This document shows, piece after piece, positions 22,517 through 26,342 of a stretch of 64,000 nucleotides of DNA (positions are counted from its first letter, which is position 1; every line of letters begins with the position of its first letter). The stretch is taken from assembly GCA_977016875.1 (NCBI GenBank), contig CDRNST010000007.1, positions 558,001-622,000 on the forward strand, written 5' to 3'. The notes beneath the pieces are model-generated. The model made no database searches. It was not told the origin of the DNA and worked only from the letters and a program-made list of their open reading frames with translations. This DNA is from Pavona decussata (lineage: Eukaryota). The position numbers were made by a program, and so were the translations under genes.

Positions 22517-25500
22517 CTAACGCCGGTACCAGGCAAAAACATCAACACACGTTTGTCCAGCGTTGTTGTCCTCGCTGCAATCCATCAAGTCTTGACCGTA
22601 CCAAATGCGAAACTCTTGACCAACTTTGACGGGAATAGGGGAGGGGAGTTTCTTGAAAGTAAGCTCGGAAGAATAGGCGTGCACTCCATTCAGGTGATAC
22701 GAATAATATCGACACGATCCCCCATTCCTTAAGTATTCAGCAACGGAAAGAACAGTCTTGTTAGAATACGTTATAACAGTTAATAGTTGGTTTTCACCAT
22801 AAGATGGATGCGCACAACCCCAATATGTCCCTGGGTGAGTGGGTATACATGCCAAGGTACCATTTCTGTGAACTAGCTTAAAGGTGTGGATGAGCCCATT
22901 TTCCAGGATGCAGAAAGCCCCGTATGTATCATCACGTGCTCCAAAGCAAACGGGATTGGTATTAATCTTCTGCCATTTTTCTGCAGTGAAAAATAAAGCA
23001 AATAAAAGTACTCAGTTATATGCTGATGTTTGTGCGTTGTTTTAATGTGGTAACTATTAATTTGTTGATTCTTTAAACTATGTTCTATGTTTTGAGCAAG
23101 GAATCATTAGATAATACGGTGGCCCATACCTGCCACGGCAAAACTTTCTTTTCCACGGCAAAACTTACTTTTCCACGGCAAAACTTTCTTTTCTACGGCA
23201 AAACTTACTTTTCCACGGCAAAACTTCATAAAGGGACTGGGACGGGATCTGTTTATAAACAGAATCAAGATGGAGACGGCTTATAGTGACAACGAAAACG
23301 GGGTTGAAGATAATACGGAAGAGGTTCTCATAAAATACTATTTTTATCGTGGTTATCAATACAAAGACATCTTAGACTTACTGGCAACCTACAACAACAT
23401 TGAAATAAGTGAACGGACTTTACACAGACGACTACGGATGTATGGACTGTCCAGGAGAAACCCCGAATATGATGTTGACACCATAATTCTCGAAATTGAA
23501 GGTATGTTAGATGGTCCTGATTGTATTGCCGGTTACAGGCATGTATAGCATAGCCTCCAGTTTAAGGGATATCAAGTTCCACGACAAGTGGTGGAGCTCT
23601 TACTTCGGAAATTGGATCCAGACGGCTGCCAAATAAAAAAAAGACATCAATTGAAAAGACGTCAGTATCATAACCCAGGTCCAAACGCCGTCTGGCACGC
23701 CGATGGATATGACAAACTTAAACCCTATGGTTTTCCAGTTCATGGTTGTATTGACGGCTGGAGTAGAAAATTGTTATGGCTGGTAGTAGTAGCACCTGTA
23801 TCAATACCAGCCTCACCATTGAAATGCACTTACAATACACTTGCCATAATGCAATTGTTCTTGAAAAGGGTGCACAGCGACGTGAAACAAGAAAAAATTC
23901 TTGCATGCGATCAACTTTTTCTGACAAGATTTTTACAATTTGGCTTGAATCTGTCACAACAGTGGTAGAACAGTTAGTGATTTCCTATAAACTCTCACTG
24001 GTGTTTTCCCATTGTTGGAGCATCTCTGGTAACTGGGATTCTTCTAAAATCTGCTGTTCTGCTGATTGAATGTTTGAGCATGAATGATCCAATTCTTGAC
24101 CACTAGTACTTGGTGAATCGCAGCTTAAGGGTGGAGTGCCATTCTTGTCAACAGAGCTTCTTGAAGGAGTAAAGACTGATGCTGACTCAAAGTCATTTGC
24201 TGAAGAACTTTCTGGCACATTGATTGGCTTGGAAAAGCTCAGTTCTGAGTTGGTGGGATTGTTGTCTTCAGACATTTCAAAGTCAGCTGTTGTGCATAGG
24301 TACATTGTTATCCTCTTATAATCTTTACCAAGTTCAGTCTTGTATTTTTCAAGTTCAAAATCGTCTTCCTGTCCTGGTAAATAGCCAGCATGGCTACCAT
24401 CTTCAAACAACAACATATAGTCTTCCTCAGGATCAAACTTCCTGTCAAATGCAGCCCACTTTTCCATTCCTTTAATTAGTATCCTTGCATAACCAGCAGA
24501 CTTCGTCACTTGAACAGGCAAACGCTTCCCCCAAATTGGTTTCAAGTCATTTCCACAATTTCTCATTTGCCCAACGTTTATTGCCACAACTTCATCAGGA
24601 TTAACCTTAACTTTCTTTTTTGGGCGAAATTTTGAACCGGATTGTTGCTGTTTATTCTTACAAGCCATGTAATCCTCAAATGACTTCGTTTTTGGCTTTT
24701 CTTGAAGTAGTACAGGCTTTCCAAACGACGTTTTGGGACTATTAGGGCCTGCTTCTTGACCAGACAAAGGACACTGAGATGGCGAACCACATTTCCAGCA
24801 GATAAGATAGGCCTACAAACCGAATTAAACAGTCTAAAAGGTAGAAATAGGGGCTAAACTTTAGAAAACCCGTCCACTGAAAAATAACTCATTACATACT
24901 GCTACGTTTTCATATACTTACACGAAATCTTCTTCCTGATCCGCCATGTTGGATCCGCAGGAGTGCAGTCAGAAGTTCCCGGATCTAAAATAGCGGGAAA
25001 CTGCAGACAGAGAGAGACTGGATTCCGGAAGTGAGGAAAAGAAAGTTTTGCCGTGGGAAAGTAAGTTTTGCCGTGGAAAAGAAAGTTTTGCCGTGGAAAA
25101 GTAAGTTTTGCCGAGGCAGGTATGGGCCACCGTAAGATAAGGAAGCTCACAACGGTTAATTTCCAGTAATTCCCTTCACTTATAATTTAATAAATCATTG
25201 CTATCACTCTCTTTCAGTGAATATTAAAATAATGGTATAAAACAAATGTCTCAATTTTAGTAAAGGGCACTTTTTTCTACTTATAGGTTACCATAGCAAC
25301 ATCACAGCCCTGCCTTAAATTTAGGATTAACGAACACCTTTCATAATAATTCAGATTTAGTGGAAAAATAATTAAAATGACCTGGGTGAATCCTATTTCT
25401 TTAATATCAAATGGTAATCAGCATGTTAAGAAACAATTTGTGCGATGTTTAGCAAACATTGTACCCAAAATGCAACTCGTTATATTGTTGTTATAGTAAC

Positions 25501-26342
25501 TTATAAACCCGAAAAAACAACTACAAGTTATTCCTCAAATAATTGGGCGTTTGTATAATTCTATTATTTTTGTAACTGATAAAGAGCCGATTTAACTGCT
25601 GGAAACCGTTGTGAGCATCCTTAAAGGAAAAAAATTCTTCCTGGCTTATAATCCTACTGAACGTTTAATTACCTTTCCCGCAATACTTCCCAACAAACTC
25701 ATCTTGGCATTTACAGTAGTAAGTATTGTCGGTTGGGTCAATCGCGCACTTTCCATTTTGAGAGCATGAATTCTCAGCGCATGCATTCTGTTGAGCAAAA
25801 GAAAAAAAAAACAGCATCCGTTTATTGAACTTATTGCATGACCATTTGTTAAAGGTATGCGTGGCAATTGGCACACAAATACACAATACTCCCGTCGTTT
25901 ACCAGAAAGATAAAGAATATAGGCAGATAGCCACTGTAACGTTGCTGGCAACACCGTAGAGTCCTTACACAAACACGATAGTTTTTGCTATTCAAAATGA
26001 CACTAAAAAAATGAAACTGCTGCCTTAAATACCATTCAAGATAAGTCTAAGAGTCACAATTTTCAAAAGTTGCATCGTAGTGTACCTTTGTGCCTTTGTA
26101 AGAAAATCCATCTGTGATCTTCAAATCTTCAGGATGTTGTATGTGATCAGAATCACTCAGTTGGCAGATGTGGTCTCCACCTTGCAGTTGGCCAAAATTG
26201 TACGAAAGGCAATCATTATCAAGGTAGCACGCCACTTGACAGGCGTCTTGCCTCTCCAGGGAAATATTTTTGATCACGTGGTTTTGAAGAGCATGCCCGT
26301 CAATGGTTGGCATAAATAACAGGTTTCTACAAGTATCTGGGG
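22517..26342 (-). CDS. Gene B: PAN/Apple-EGF protein with 'PVCFGA/WYGQDL' C-terminal domain. Exons 26342(or 26336)-26086, 25787-25673, 22980-22517; signal exon not securely found
   Basis: PAN exon [56 protein letters not shown] exon [36 protein letters not shown], and last exon KWQKINTNPVCFGARDD...WYGQDLMDCSEDNNAGQTCVDVFAWYRR*. Phases join in frame. A weak candidate first exon is 30631-30541 (MYLLVLVLYCITLYF..., phase 1). Confidence 0.82.
23270..23790 (+). pseudogene. Truncated IS3/integrase-core DDE transposase of the IS3EU-type element
   Basis: HTH region (ISERTLHRRL) and core GPNAVWHADGYDKLKPYGFPVHGCIDGWSRKLLWL. In-frame stop at 23546-48. Cut off before the remaining catalytic residues. 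Confidence 0.85.
23791..24947 (-). pseudogene. Second (convergent) ORF of the IS3EU-type element, ending in a HECT N-lobe-like motif
   Basis: Short exon MADQEEDF.., then CWKCGSP and ORF 23985-24767, then FFLVSRR.APFSR.IALWQ and VHFNGEAGIDTGA (23829-23791), which resembles the HECT 'F-x-G-E-x-G-x-D-x-G' motif. Confidence 0.6.
25141..25620. mobile_element. Kolobok-like MITE abutting the IS3EU-type element
   Basis: ggaagctcacaacggtt / aaccgttgtgagcatcc, flanked by ataa and ttaa. Confidence 0.6.

Follow-up and report, generated by a model that had tools for sequence, protein, structure and literature searches.

Probable retention of an ancestral AJLec-type lectin head by a coral PAN-EGF gene, and probable exchange of the head in the adjoining tandem array

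The window—by which we mean the whole 64,000-nucleotide stretch analysed (positions 558,001 to 622,000, forward strand, of contig CDRNST010000007.1; Pavona decussata assembly GCA_977016875.1)—holds four minus-strand paralogues, here called A to D (Table 1). Gene B, which the exon coordinates confirm as lying between A and C, is intact and spliced, with four exons (the first a candidate) and 309 codons that encode a signal peptide, a PAN/Apple domain, an EGF-like domain and an AJLec-type lectin head, or 'tip'. Working from the 5′ end of the gene downwards, we see that the candidate first exon ends like its candidate counterparts in A (20144-20231) and C (47266-47350); a tblastx search upstream of B for a conserved first exon gave no match. 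The PAN exon reaches 29.3 bits against Pfam PAN_1 (cut-off 21.4) and the EGF exon, in which six cysteines are visible, 25.6 bits against Pfam EGF (cut-off 21.5); searches and fold prediction were made with single exons rather than with a joined protein model. The splice between EGF and tip is seen directly, one contig of run X7 joining position 22980 to 25673 at GT..AG (depth 3.7). B is a normal gene of a long-established coral lectin family and is expressed, where 'expressed' draws on a run presumed, by guess only, to be RNA.

Table 1. Features of genes A to D and of the third intron of B (window coordinates).
Feature	Position	Strand	Remarks
A PAN exon	18108..18358	-	Pfam PAN_1 19.3 bits, just under cut-off of 21.4
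A EGF exon	16853..16970	-	phase 0 in, phase 1 out
A exon 4, AJLec-type lectin domain	15134..15615	-	47% identity to that of B
B exon 1 (candidate)	28347..28440	-	start codon and signal-peptide-like hydrophobic segment; ends in phase 1 with good donor (motif search)
B exon 2, PAN/Apple	26086..26342	-	phase-1 acceptor, phase-0 donor
B exon 3, EGF-like	25673..25787	-	phase 0 in, phase 1 out
B intron 3	22981..25672	-	phase 1, GT..AG (CT..AC on plus strand), 2692 nt
Internally deleted DNA transposon copy, ~2.0 kb	23111..25134	+	parent family ~5.8 kb
MITE-like repeat, ~490 bp	25138..25623	.	inverted ends 25138-25157 / 25604-25623
B exon 4, AJLec-type lectin domain ('tip')	22517..22980	-	stop codon included; covered by X7 contigs
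C PAN exon	45456..45706	-	
C EGF exon	44760..44877	-	phase-1 donor
C head, three fibrinogen/COLFI-like exons	within 43835-44068, 42781-42978, 34764-35123	-	
D	56961..62458	-	PAN 62198-62458, EGF 61612-61731, head exons 60690-60896, 59594-59791, 56961-57314

The third intron of B has exactly the boundaries and phase given to it by the first-pass annotation, and contains the two repeats claimed for it, a transposon remnant and a MITE-like element; together, inserted repeats fill some 2.5 kb. The 100-nt inverted arms of the transposon (23115-23214 and 25035-25134) are 93% identical and built of 20-nt subterminal repeats; its open reading frames comprise an integrase-core remnant (Pfam rva_4, E 3e-10) and, on the opposite strand, one of 260 amino acids. 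This copy is non-autonomous and 91–97% identical to 10–12 longer copies of its family, relative to which it has suffered two internal deletions. The MITE-like repeat belongs to an older family of at least 40 dispersed copies (70–79%), and its two arms align to shared loci with opposed orientations.

The annotation had itself raised a misassembly at 23–25.7 kb, by which the EGF and tip exons would be misjoined over a repeat, and the X1 and X3 short-read contigs do break within the transposon. These contigs, however, link the tip exon to the left arm (22400-23143), and the right arm to the MITE and EGF exon (25084-25989); L051, an ENA assembly of independent origin, stays collinear for 12.7 kb (95.7%), both exons, transposon and MITE included, with an orthologous intron of ~2675 nt; and the X7 contig crosses the junction as described. 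The structure of B is confirmed, and we give an assembly artefact next to no chance.

The tip found no family in a Pfam search. A profile of 20 tip sequences, run with hmmsearch against PDB, retrieves 6a56_A at E 1.3e-31 (positions 1–153 aligned to 6–163 of the chain), such that the full domain of ~155 residues is homologous to AJLec. The AlphaFold2 model of B exon 4 (pLDDT 77.7, pTM 0.78) is a small predicted jelly-roll beta-sandwich, for which Foldseek likewise returns 6a56_A (E 2e-10, TM 0.80/0.75, 29% identity), the next match lying at E 0.02. The tip, previously nameless, can now be called an AJLec-type lectin head, and this identity gives both A and B a probable function. It is a single-exon, phase-1 cassette: at least 104 copies of the exon are found in this genome—that is, more than 100 in one coral—and in 31 of the 31 examined the acceptor is in phase 1 and lies 5 nt upstream of the first Trp codon. 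The exon occurs alone, as a tandem trio, behind Ca-binding EGF repeats and behind PAN-EGF; the last arrangement is present in at least six genes here, and also in Oculina, Pocillopora, Stylophora, Montipora and Acropora. The PAN-EGF-AJLec layout is both old and standard, and is widespread in stony corals.

Genes C and D are without a tip, their PAN-EGF 'stalk' being followed by three fibrinogen-like exons of the same types in both. The first of these, in C, carries a fibrinogen/COLFI-type opening motif, its Pfam match to Fibrinogen_C or COLFI being weak and below cut-off (Fibrinogen_C E 0.008); the second and third matched no Pfam family, and ESM Atlas matches for the last exon of C, bacterial and all sub-threshold, were discarded. 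The introns of the C head (34764..44068) are long and have a high content of transposons and of masked N. C and D belong to a six-gene tandem array, C–H, that adjoins B, and within which heads diverge much faster than stalks: DNA identity between C and D falls from 93.9% around PAN to 87.6% in the middle and 83.4% in the last exon. In all genes examined, the intron between EGF and head is in phase 1 and at the same position. The nearest fibrinogen-like tails outside the array lie at C85:2.17–2.20 Mb (C85:2173548, 2197362 and 2204474) and at C185:913137.

The first-pass annotation had taken B for a chimera, in which a stalk of C/D type was joined to a tip of A type by recombination within the third intron. 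The observations on which this was built hold up well. The EGF strings and the PAN motif that it quoted are present, and the per-exon identities that it proposed as a check place the stalk of B with C and D: by tblastn, the EGF of B is 76–78% identical to those of C/D against 42–48% for A, and its PAN domain 66–67% to C and 64–65% to D against 47–49% for A. Likeness of the last exon to that of A (44–48%, tblastn) stands as a shared domain family, being the only homology of this exon within the window, but is not specific to A: the B tip is 47% identical to that of A versus 52–60% to other PAN-linked tips, and the A tip ranks 25th against it among the tips of this genome. Moreover, the identity of A to B is the same in both parts (47% for tip and 47% for PAN), the tip thus being no closer to A than the stalk is.

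Neither is the combination unique. Stalk and tip of B-like type occur together in X85, an unlinked gene on contig C85 (C85:433861-436640; PAN 66%, tip 56% to B), and, in other assemblies, in L052/L053 (L052: PAN 74%, tip 60%), L058/L059 and L063 (PAN 64%, tip 59%), the last with a fibrinogen-like tail immediately upstream, an arrangement also seen in the window. The partners of B fall in the same order for tip and stalk—L052, L063, L058 and X85, A—which fits co-inheritance of the two parts. Stalk and tip of B are congruent, their nearest relatives being X85, L052 and L063 in both cases, and the notion of B as the recombinant is not supported.

A converse account, that B was originally A-like and that conversion by the C-type array next door replaced its PAN and EGF exons, would draw on the adjacency of B to that array and on the C–D identity gradient, which is compatible with homogenisation of 5′ ends. 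However, the stalk exons of B share just 70–76% DNA identity with the array and intron homology is absent; the pairing of these stalk and tip types recurs in L052, L063 and X85; and a sister relationship of B to the local array is rejected by the AU test (p 0.018). We consider it very improbable.

Trees were also computed, with 87 PAN columns and 38–43 EGF columns—these being short exons—aligned separately and set side by side. They leave out second-assembly copies identical to rows already present (L053, L057, L059, L061), genes for which the EGF of B, as query, had no EGF match inside 4 kb (L042 and L044, both Ig-containing, as well as L043, L033, L034 and the plus-strand L039) and PAN exons that have a frame change (L032, L038) or are partial (L062). 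In the PAN+EGF tree, the tip-tailed X85 and L058 are basal within an inner clade (98/96*), in which a 91/92 subclade unites genes bearing B-type tips with all fibrinogen-like-tailed genes. Tip-tailed genes are accordingly paraphyletic on PAN+EGF; their monophyly is rejected by AU at p 0.040 and 0.029, so the paraphyly carries a p of only 0.03–0.04. The data accord with a monophyletic fibrinogen-like-tailed group (lnL difference 0.28, p 0.35). A clade of B with A is rejected both for PAN (p 0.018) and for PAN+EGF (p 0.0044). The EGF-only tree favours B with the array (86/87), B with X85 not being rejected (p 0.115). The tip tree groups B with L052, X85 and the remaining PAN-linked tips (95/91*) and leaves A outside, its tip being more distant than any other that is PAN-linked; A as donor of the B tip is not supported, although A and B as sister tips are not rejected (p 0.14–0.16).

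Could the B lineage be a chimera of greater age, in which a fibrinogen-like-tailed ancestor of B, L052 and L063 regained an AJLec exon from a PAN-EGF-AJLec paralogue through the phase-1 intron? The uniform phase and position of the EGF-to-head introns would make such an exchange mechanically easy, and A and B as sister tips, as just noted, stay within the AU limits. Trees of PAN alone do not separate B, X85 and the array, public coral proteins adding just long branches; the PAN tree calls for no fewer than two changes of head within the family, a single partition being rejected (p 0.002). Against this, on the PAN+EGF trees a regained head costs two changes where one suffices, tip identities follow stalk identities across partners, and A is not the nearest tip. 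An event of this kind, which we think unlikely, would have preceded divergence from the L052 and L063 species, and would be unconnected with the adjacency of A, B and C or with the transposon.

The explanation that we favour, and consider probable as a whole, is that B keeps an ancestral architecture and that the genes of C–H are the ones that changed heads. B would retain the original form of the clade, a PAN-EGF stalk with an AJLec head in one phase-1 exon, and the common ancestor of C–H and their relatives in other corals would most likely have been a tandem copy of a B-type gene, in which a three-exon fibrinogen/COLFI-like head replaced the lectin exon at the phase-1 intron that follows EGF. 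Since tip-tailed genes form a paraphyletic group within which the fibrinogen-like-tailed ones are nested, the C–H head appears derived; the direction of the swap, like the origin by tandem duplication, is inferred. Saying this, PAN-EGF genes outside the clade (L040, L041, L043, L042, L044) also carry fibrinogen/COLFI-like heads, indicating that this head too is old on such a stalk, and polarity depends on rooting. On the favoured explanation the stalk of B would resemble those of C and D through a recent shared stalk ancestor, and its tip that of A solely because both retain the original head of the family. The annotated idea of a domain swap in a phase-1 intron therefore keeps part of its force, in that a head swap at the conserved intron does separate B from C/D; the true replacement, however, is placed on the C–H lineage, bearer of the fast-evolving fibrinogen-like heads.

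The intron itself holds no trace of such an event. The breakpoint mapping suggested for 22981-25672 had nothing to work on: in a sensitive blastn search of 21.5–27.5 kb against the window and paralogous loci, only exons match (68–76%) and no intron homology brackets the junction, so no breakpoint is mappable. With 91–97% identity to its family, compared with 68–76% DNA identity between paralogue exons, the transposon is far younger than the swap, and its presence cannot mark the event as had been proposed; transposon and MITE are later insertions, unrelated to it. B is, in short, not a freshly made chimera but an ordinary member of a conserved family. More tentatively, and a little short of an even bet, stony corals may possess a PAN-EGF stalk with interchangeable heads (AJLec, fibrinogen/COLFI-like) exchanged more than once at one phase-1 intron, the heads then diversifying fast in tandem arrays whilst stalks stay near-identical; if true, this would be a cassette system through which an animal that lacks adaptive immunity diversifies its recognition proteins.

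AJLec is a galactose-specific, Ca2+-dependent lectin of Anthopleura japonica (PDB 6A56; PMC6070535), with internal disulfides Cys15-Cys156 and Cys48-Cys61 and with homologues in anemones and corals only, 29 of them in Stylophora and 7 in Nematostella (PMC6070535). The B domain shares with it homology over the whole domain, the predicted fold and the four disulfide cysteines, which align with C10, C43, C54 and C143 of the B exon; across 20 paralogues three are invariant and C54 nearly so (≥90%). Galactose binding, by Arg64 and a hydrophobic platform, and haemagglutination characterise the AJLec type. AJLec stands alone as an 18.5 kDa dimer, whereas the B domain forms the C-terminal head of a PAN-EGF protein. 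At the sugar site the two also differ: in the alignment, the Ca2+ ligands Glu141/Asp150/Asn151 correspond to Gln, Asn and Asn in B, such that oxygen ligands are retained but two carboxylates are gone (the first two positions vary in the family), and the galactose-binding Arg64 aligns with Pro. Given these substitutions, Ca2+ binding and sugar specificity of the B head stay putative; the product of B is probably a secreted glycan-recognition protein, whose head would bind sugar.

Among other known systems, IS3EU-type DNA transposons are marked by a DDE transposase of the IS3EU clade, terminal inverted repeats and a target-site duplication; the intron element, with its long inverted ends, subterminal repeats and DDE-type integrase-core remnant, is a candidate for this superfamily. 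The heads of C–H, with a fibrinogen/COLFI-type opening on the same stalk, recall the fibrinogen-related and intelectin-like immune-type lectin heads of invertebrates, the Pfam match being weak. Extracellular modules bounded by phase-1 introns shuffle as exons (Patthy's 1-1 rule), and the head cassettes of all genes examined begin at a phase-1 intron in the same position; there is no difference in principle, and these genes are an example of the rule rather than an exception. They offer a concrete instance of module exchange in coral pattern-recognition genes, by a process that is itself well known and not new.

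The window (G000:C7:558001-622000, where G000 is the 602 Mb eukaryotic source genome and C7 one of its contigs) holds four paralogous genes, all on the minus strand; its protein relatives all come from stony corals. In A and B, PAN and EGF are followed by a single large last exon (the ‘tip’); in C and D they are followed by three more exons, the first with a weak fibrinogen/COLFI signature. The exons modelled for B total 930 coding nt (309 codons), with introns in phases 1, 0 and 1.

Gene B, related genes and transposon copies (identities are to B)
Feature	Location	Strand	Description
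B exon 1	28440-28347	-	candidate; signal-peptide-like
B PAN exon	26342-26086	-	gene model
B EGF exon	25787-25673	-	gene model
B tip exon	22980-22517	-	gene model
X85	C85:433861-436640		PAN-tip gene
PAN-tip gene	C7:711958-714117		
PAN-tip gene pair	C7:862-877 kb		
Transposon family copies (examples)	G000:C24:640009-645718; C90:616601-622428; C196:1726592-1732442		
L051			syntenic orthologue of B; PAN 92%, EGF 100%, tip 97%
L052/L053			PAN-EGF-tip; PAN 74%, EGF 66%, tip 60%
L063			PAN-EGF-tip, fibrinogen-like tail directly upstream as in window; PAN 64%, EGF 62%, tip 59%
L058/L059			X85-like PAN-EGF-tip; PAN 65%, EGF 48%, tip 57%
L054, L055, L056/57, L064			PAN-EGF with C-type head; PAN 65-74%

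The first-pass annotation read B as a chimera of a C/D-type stalk (PAN plus EGF) and an A-type tip. The stalk is indeed C/D-like rather than A-like, at 64-67% versus 47-49% identity in PAN and 76-78% versus 42-48% in EGF, with a B+A clade rejected by AU tests (PAN, p 0.018; PAN+EGF, p 0.0044). The last exon is shared with A (44-48% identity) and has no counterpart in C/D, and the junction intron, 22981-25672 in phase 1, had been placed exactly. The tip is homologous to that of A but not SPECIFICALLY A-like, A being only 25th in rank against B among the genome's tips. Pairwise, A and B are 47% identical in PAN and tip alike; B and X85, a PAN-EGF-tip gene on another contig, are 66% identical in PAN and 56% in tip. 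Tip trees group B with X85, L052 (from a coral assembly) and other PAN-linked tips (96/88*, 95/91*), leaving A outside; A and B as tip sisters are disfavoured (p 0.16 and 0.14), yet rejection of the clade is not reached.

The architecture itself is common. G000 contains at least 104 tip exons; in all 31 examined, a phase-1 acceptor marks the start, 5 nt ahead of the first Trp codon. In a public protein library, 1063 cluster representatives match the tip at E up to 0.001, including PAN-EGF-tip proteins from Oculina, Pocillopora, Stylophora, Montipora and Acropora. PAN lies upstream of a tip in at least six G000 genes (A, B and those tabulated), whose tips share one side of a 99/97* branch in a tree of 30. 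Large tandem clusters of AJLec-type tip exons, mostly with no PAN exon nearby, occur on C62 (about 20 at 0.47-0.84 Mb), C204 (about 15 at 2.62-2.78 Mb), C49, C114, C308, C273, C108 and C126; in public relatives the domain stands alone, is present three times in tandem, or follows Ca-binding EGF repeats.

A transposon does lie in the junction intron, as had been noted: it spans 2.0 kb, carries inverted arms of 100 nt and the remnant of an integrase core, and has a MITE-like repeat beside it. This copy has two internal deletions and is 91-97% identical to 10-12 longer ones. Both insertions recur in L051, the orthologous locus, and without them the intron would measure a few hundred bases, like the roughly 600 of X85. 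Proposed as witnesses of a domain swap, they are far younger than it and carry no information on it. Sensitive blastn of the B locus against any paralogue returned exon matches only (68-76%) and no intron homology, so no breakpoint could be mapped in 22981-25672. The family to which window 23111-25134 belongs numbers about 10-12 copies, each roughly 5.8 kb long and 91-97% identical, and was therefore active fairly recently; contigs from two RNA-type runs, X7 and X18, cover its inner parts. The opposite strand carries an ORF of 260 aa (23988-24767) that matched no Pfam family.

A misassembly at 23-25.7 kb is contradicted by L051, which follows window 31747-19184 collinearly for 12.7 kb (95.7% identity), and by contigs of two DNA-type runs covering both flanks (22400-23143 and 25084-25989). 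In one low-depth contig from X7 (guessed to be RNA-type), 22980 abuts 25673 and the 2692 nt between them, bounded by GT..AG on the gene strand, are missing, which suggests that the EGF-tip junction is spliced as predicted. Run X3, whose sample differs from that of X1, shows a 16-nt insertion at 23086, just outside the transposon's left end, and substitutions at 22845 and 22852 in the tip exon; these are ordinary polymorphism.

In the PAN tree, B, X85 and the array C-H (six tandem genes adjoining B) form a clade (92/90) of unresolved internal order; with EGF alone, B joins the array and X85 falls outside (86/87). Concatenating the PAN and EGF alignments, each made separately (131 columns in total), gives an inner clade (98/96*) in which X85 and L058 are basal and a 91/92 subclade unites B-type tip genes with all fibrinogen-like-tailed genes. 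Here, the data reject both a monophyletic group of tip-tailed genes (p 0.040 and 0.029) and B as sister to the local array (p 0.018); monophyly of fibrinogen-like-tailed genes costs 0.28 lnL (p 0.35). For the wider family, a topology in which a single branch separates every tip-tailed gene from the rest is rejected (p 0.002); heads therefore changed at least twice. All these trees use short exons, and their p values are moderate. If the inner clade is rooted from outside, a single change would suffice: a fibrinogen-like head would have taken the place of the lectin head on the stem leading to C-H and relatives. B as a recombinant with A as donor is thus not supported; the exchange at a phase-1 intron proposed with it is plausible, but for the head of C-H. 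B is probably an ordinary, functional PAN-EGF-AJLec lectin gene with the ancestral head, and C-H the genes whose head was replaced.

Searching ENA coral assemblies with the B PAN exon, finding exon-level ORFs and then mapping the contigs yielded the L051-L064 loci tabulated. L052 and L055 share one assembly, so the two architectures already existed together before these species diverged.

C (34669-46498) and D (56866-63240) align through their introns as well, with DNA identity declining from 93.9% near the PAN exon through 87.6% midway to 83.4% at the last head exon; their retroelement-rich introns hold masked N stretches (35554-39848, 51524-51762, 58267-58441) with reverse-transcriptase ORFs around. 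Across the array, PAN exons are nearly identical and last exons only 44-68% identical to C: a rapidly diversifying head sits on a stalk that is either conserved or homogenised. Two PAN exons, of array gene H (L038:8792-9044; G000:C7:698792-699044) and of a PAN-tip gene on the plus strand at C7:712 kb (L032:2956-3193; G000:C7:711956-712193), each align as two segments that differ in frame; given these possible frameshifts, the genes may be pseudogenes or the assembly may be faulty there. C-type head fragments at G000:C7:401490-441011, 117-157 kb before the window (middle exon 76% identical; last-exon pieces 50-52%, with stop codons), are probably decayed array members. At L042 (G000:C7:3253000-3262000) and L044 (C31:171000-178000), PAN and EGF precede one large exon with two Ig and a COLFI-like domain, a third kind of head on this stalk.

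Pfam has no model for the tip. A 20-copy tip profile gives a full-length match to AJLec (6A56), a galactose lectin from a sea anemone (E 1.3e-31), and an AlphaFold2 model of the B tip exon (pLDDT 77.7) matches 6A56 at TM 0.80, with no other close match; all four cysteines that form AJLec's two internal disulfides are kept. A and B thus code for PAN-EGF proteins whose head is an AJLec-type lectin domain, and we infer that this head binds sugar. Of AJLec's three side-chain Ca2+ ligands, B keeps the Asn, with Gln and Asn in place of Glu and Asp, and the galactose-binding Arg64 aligns with a Pro (PMC6070535).
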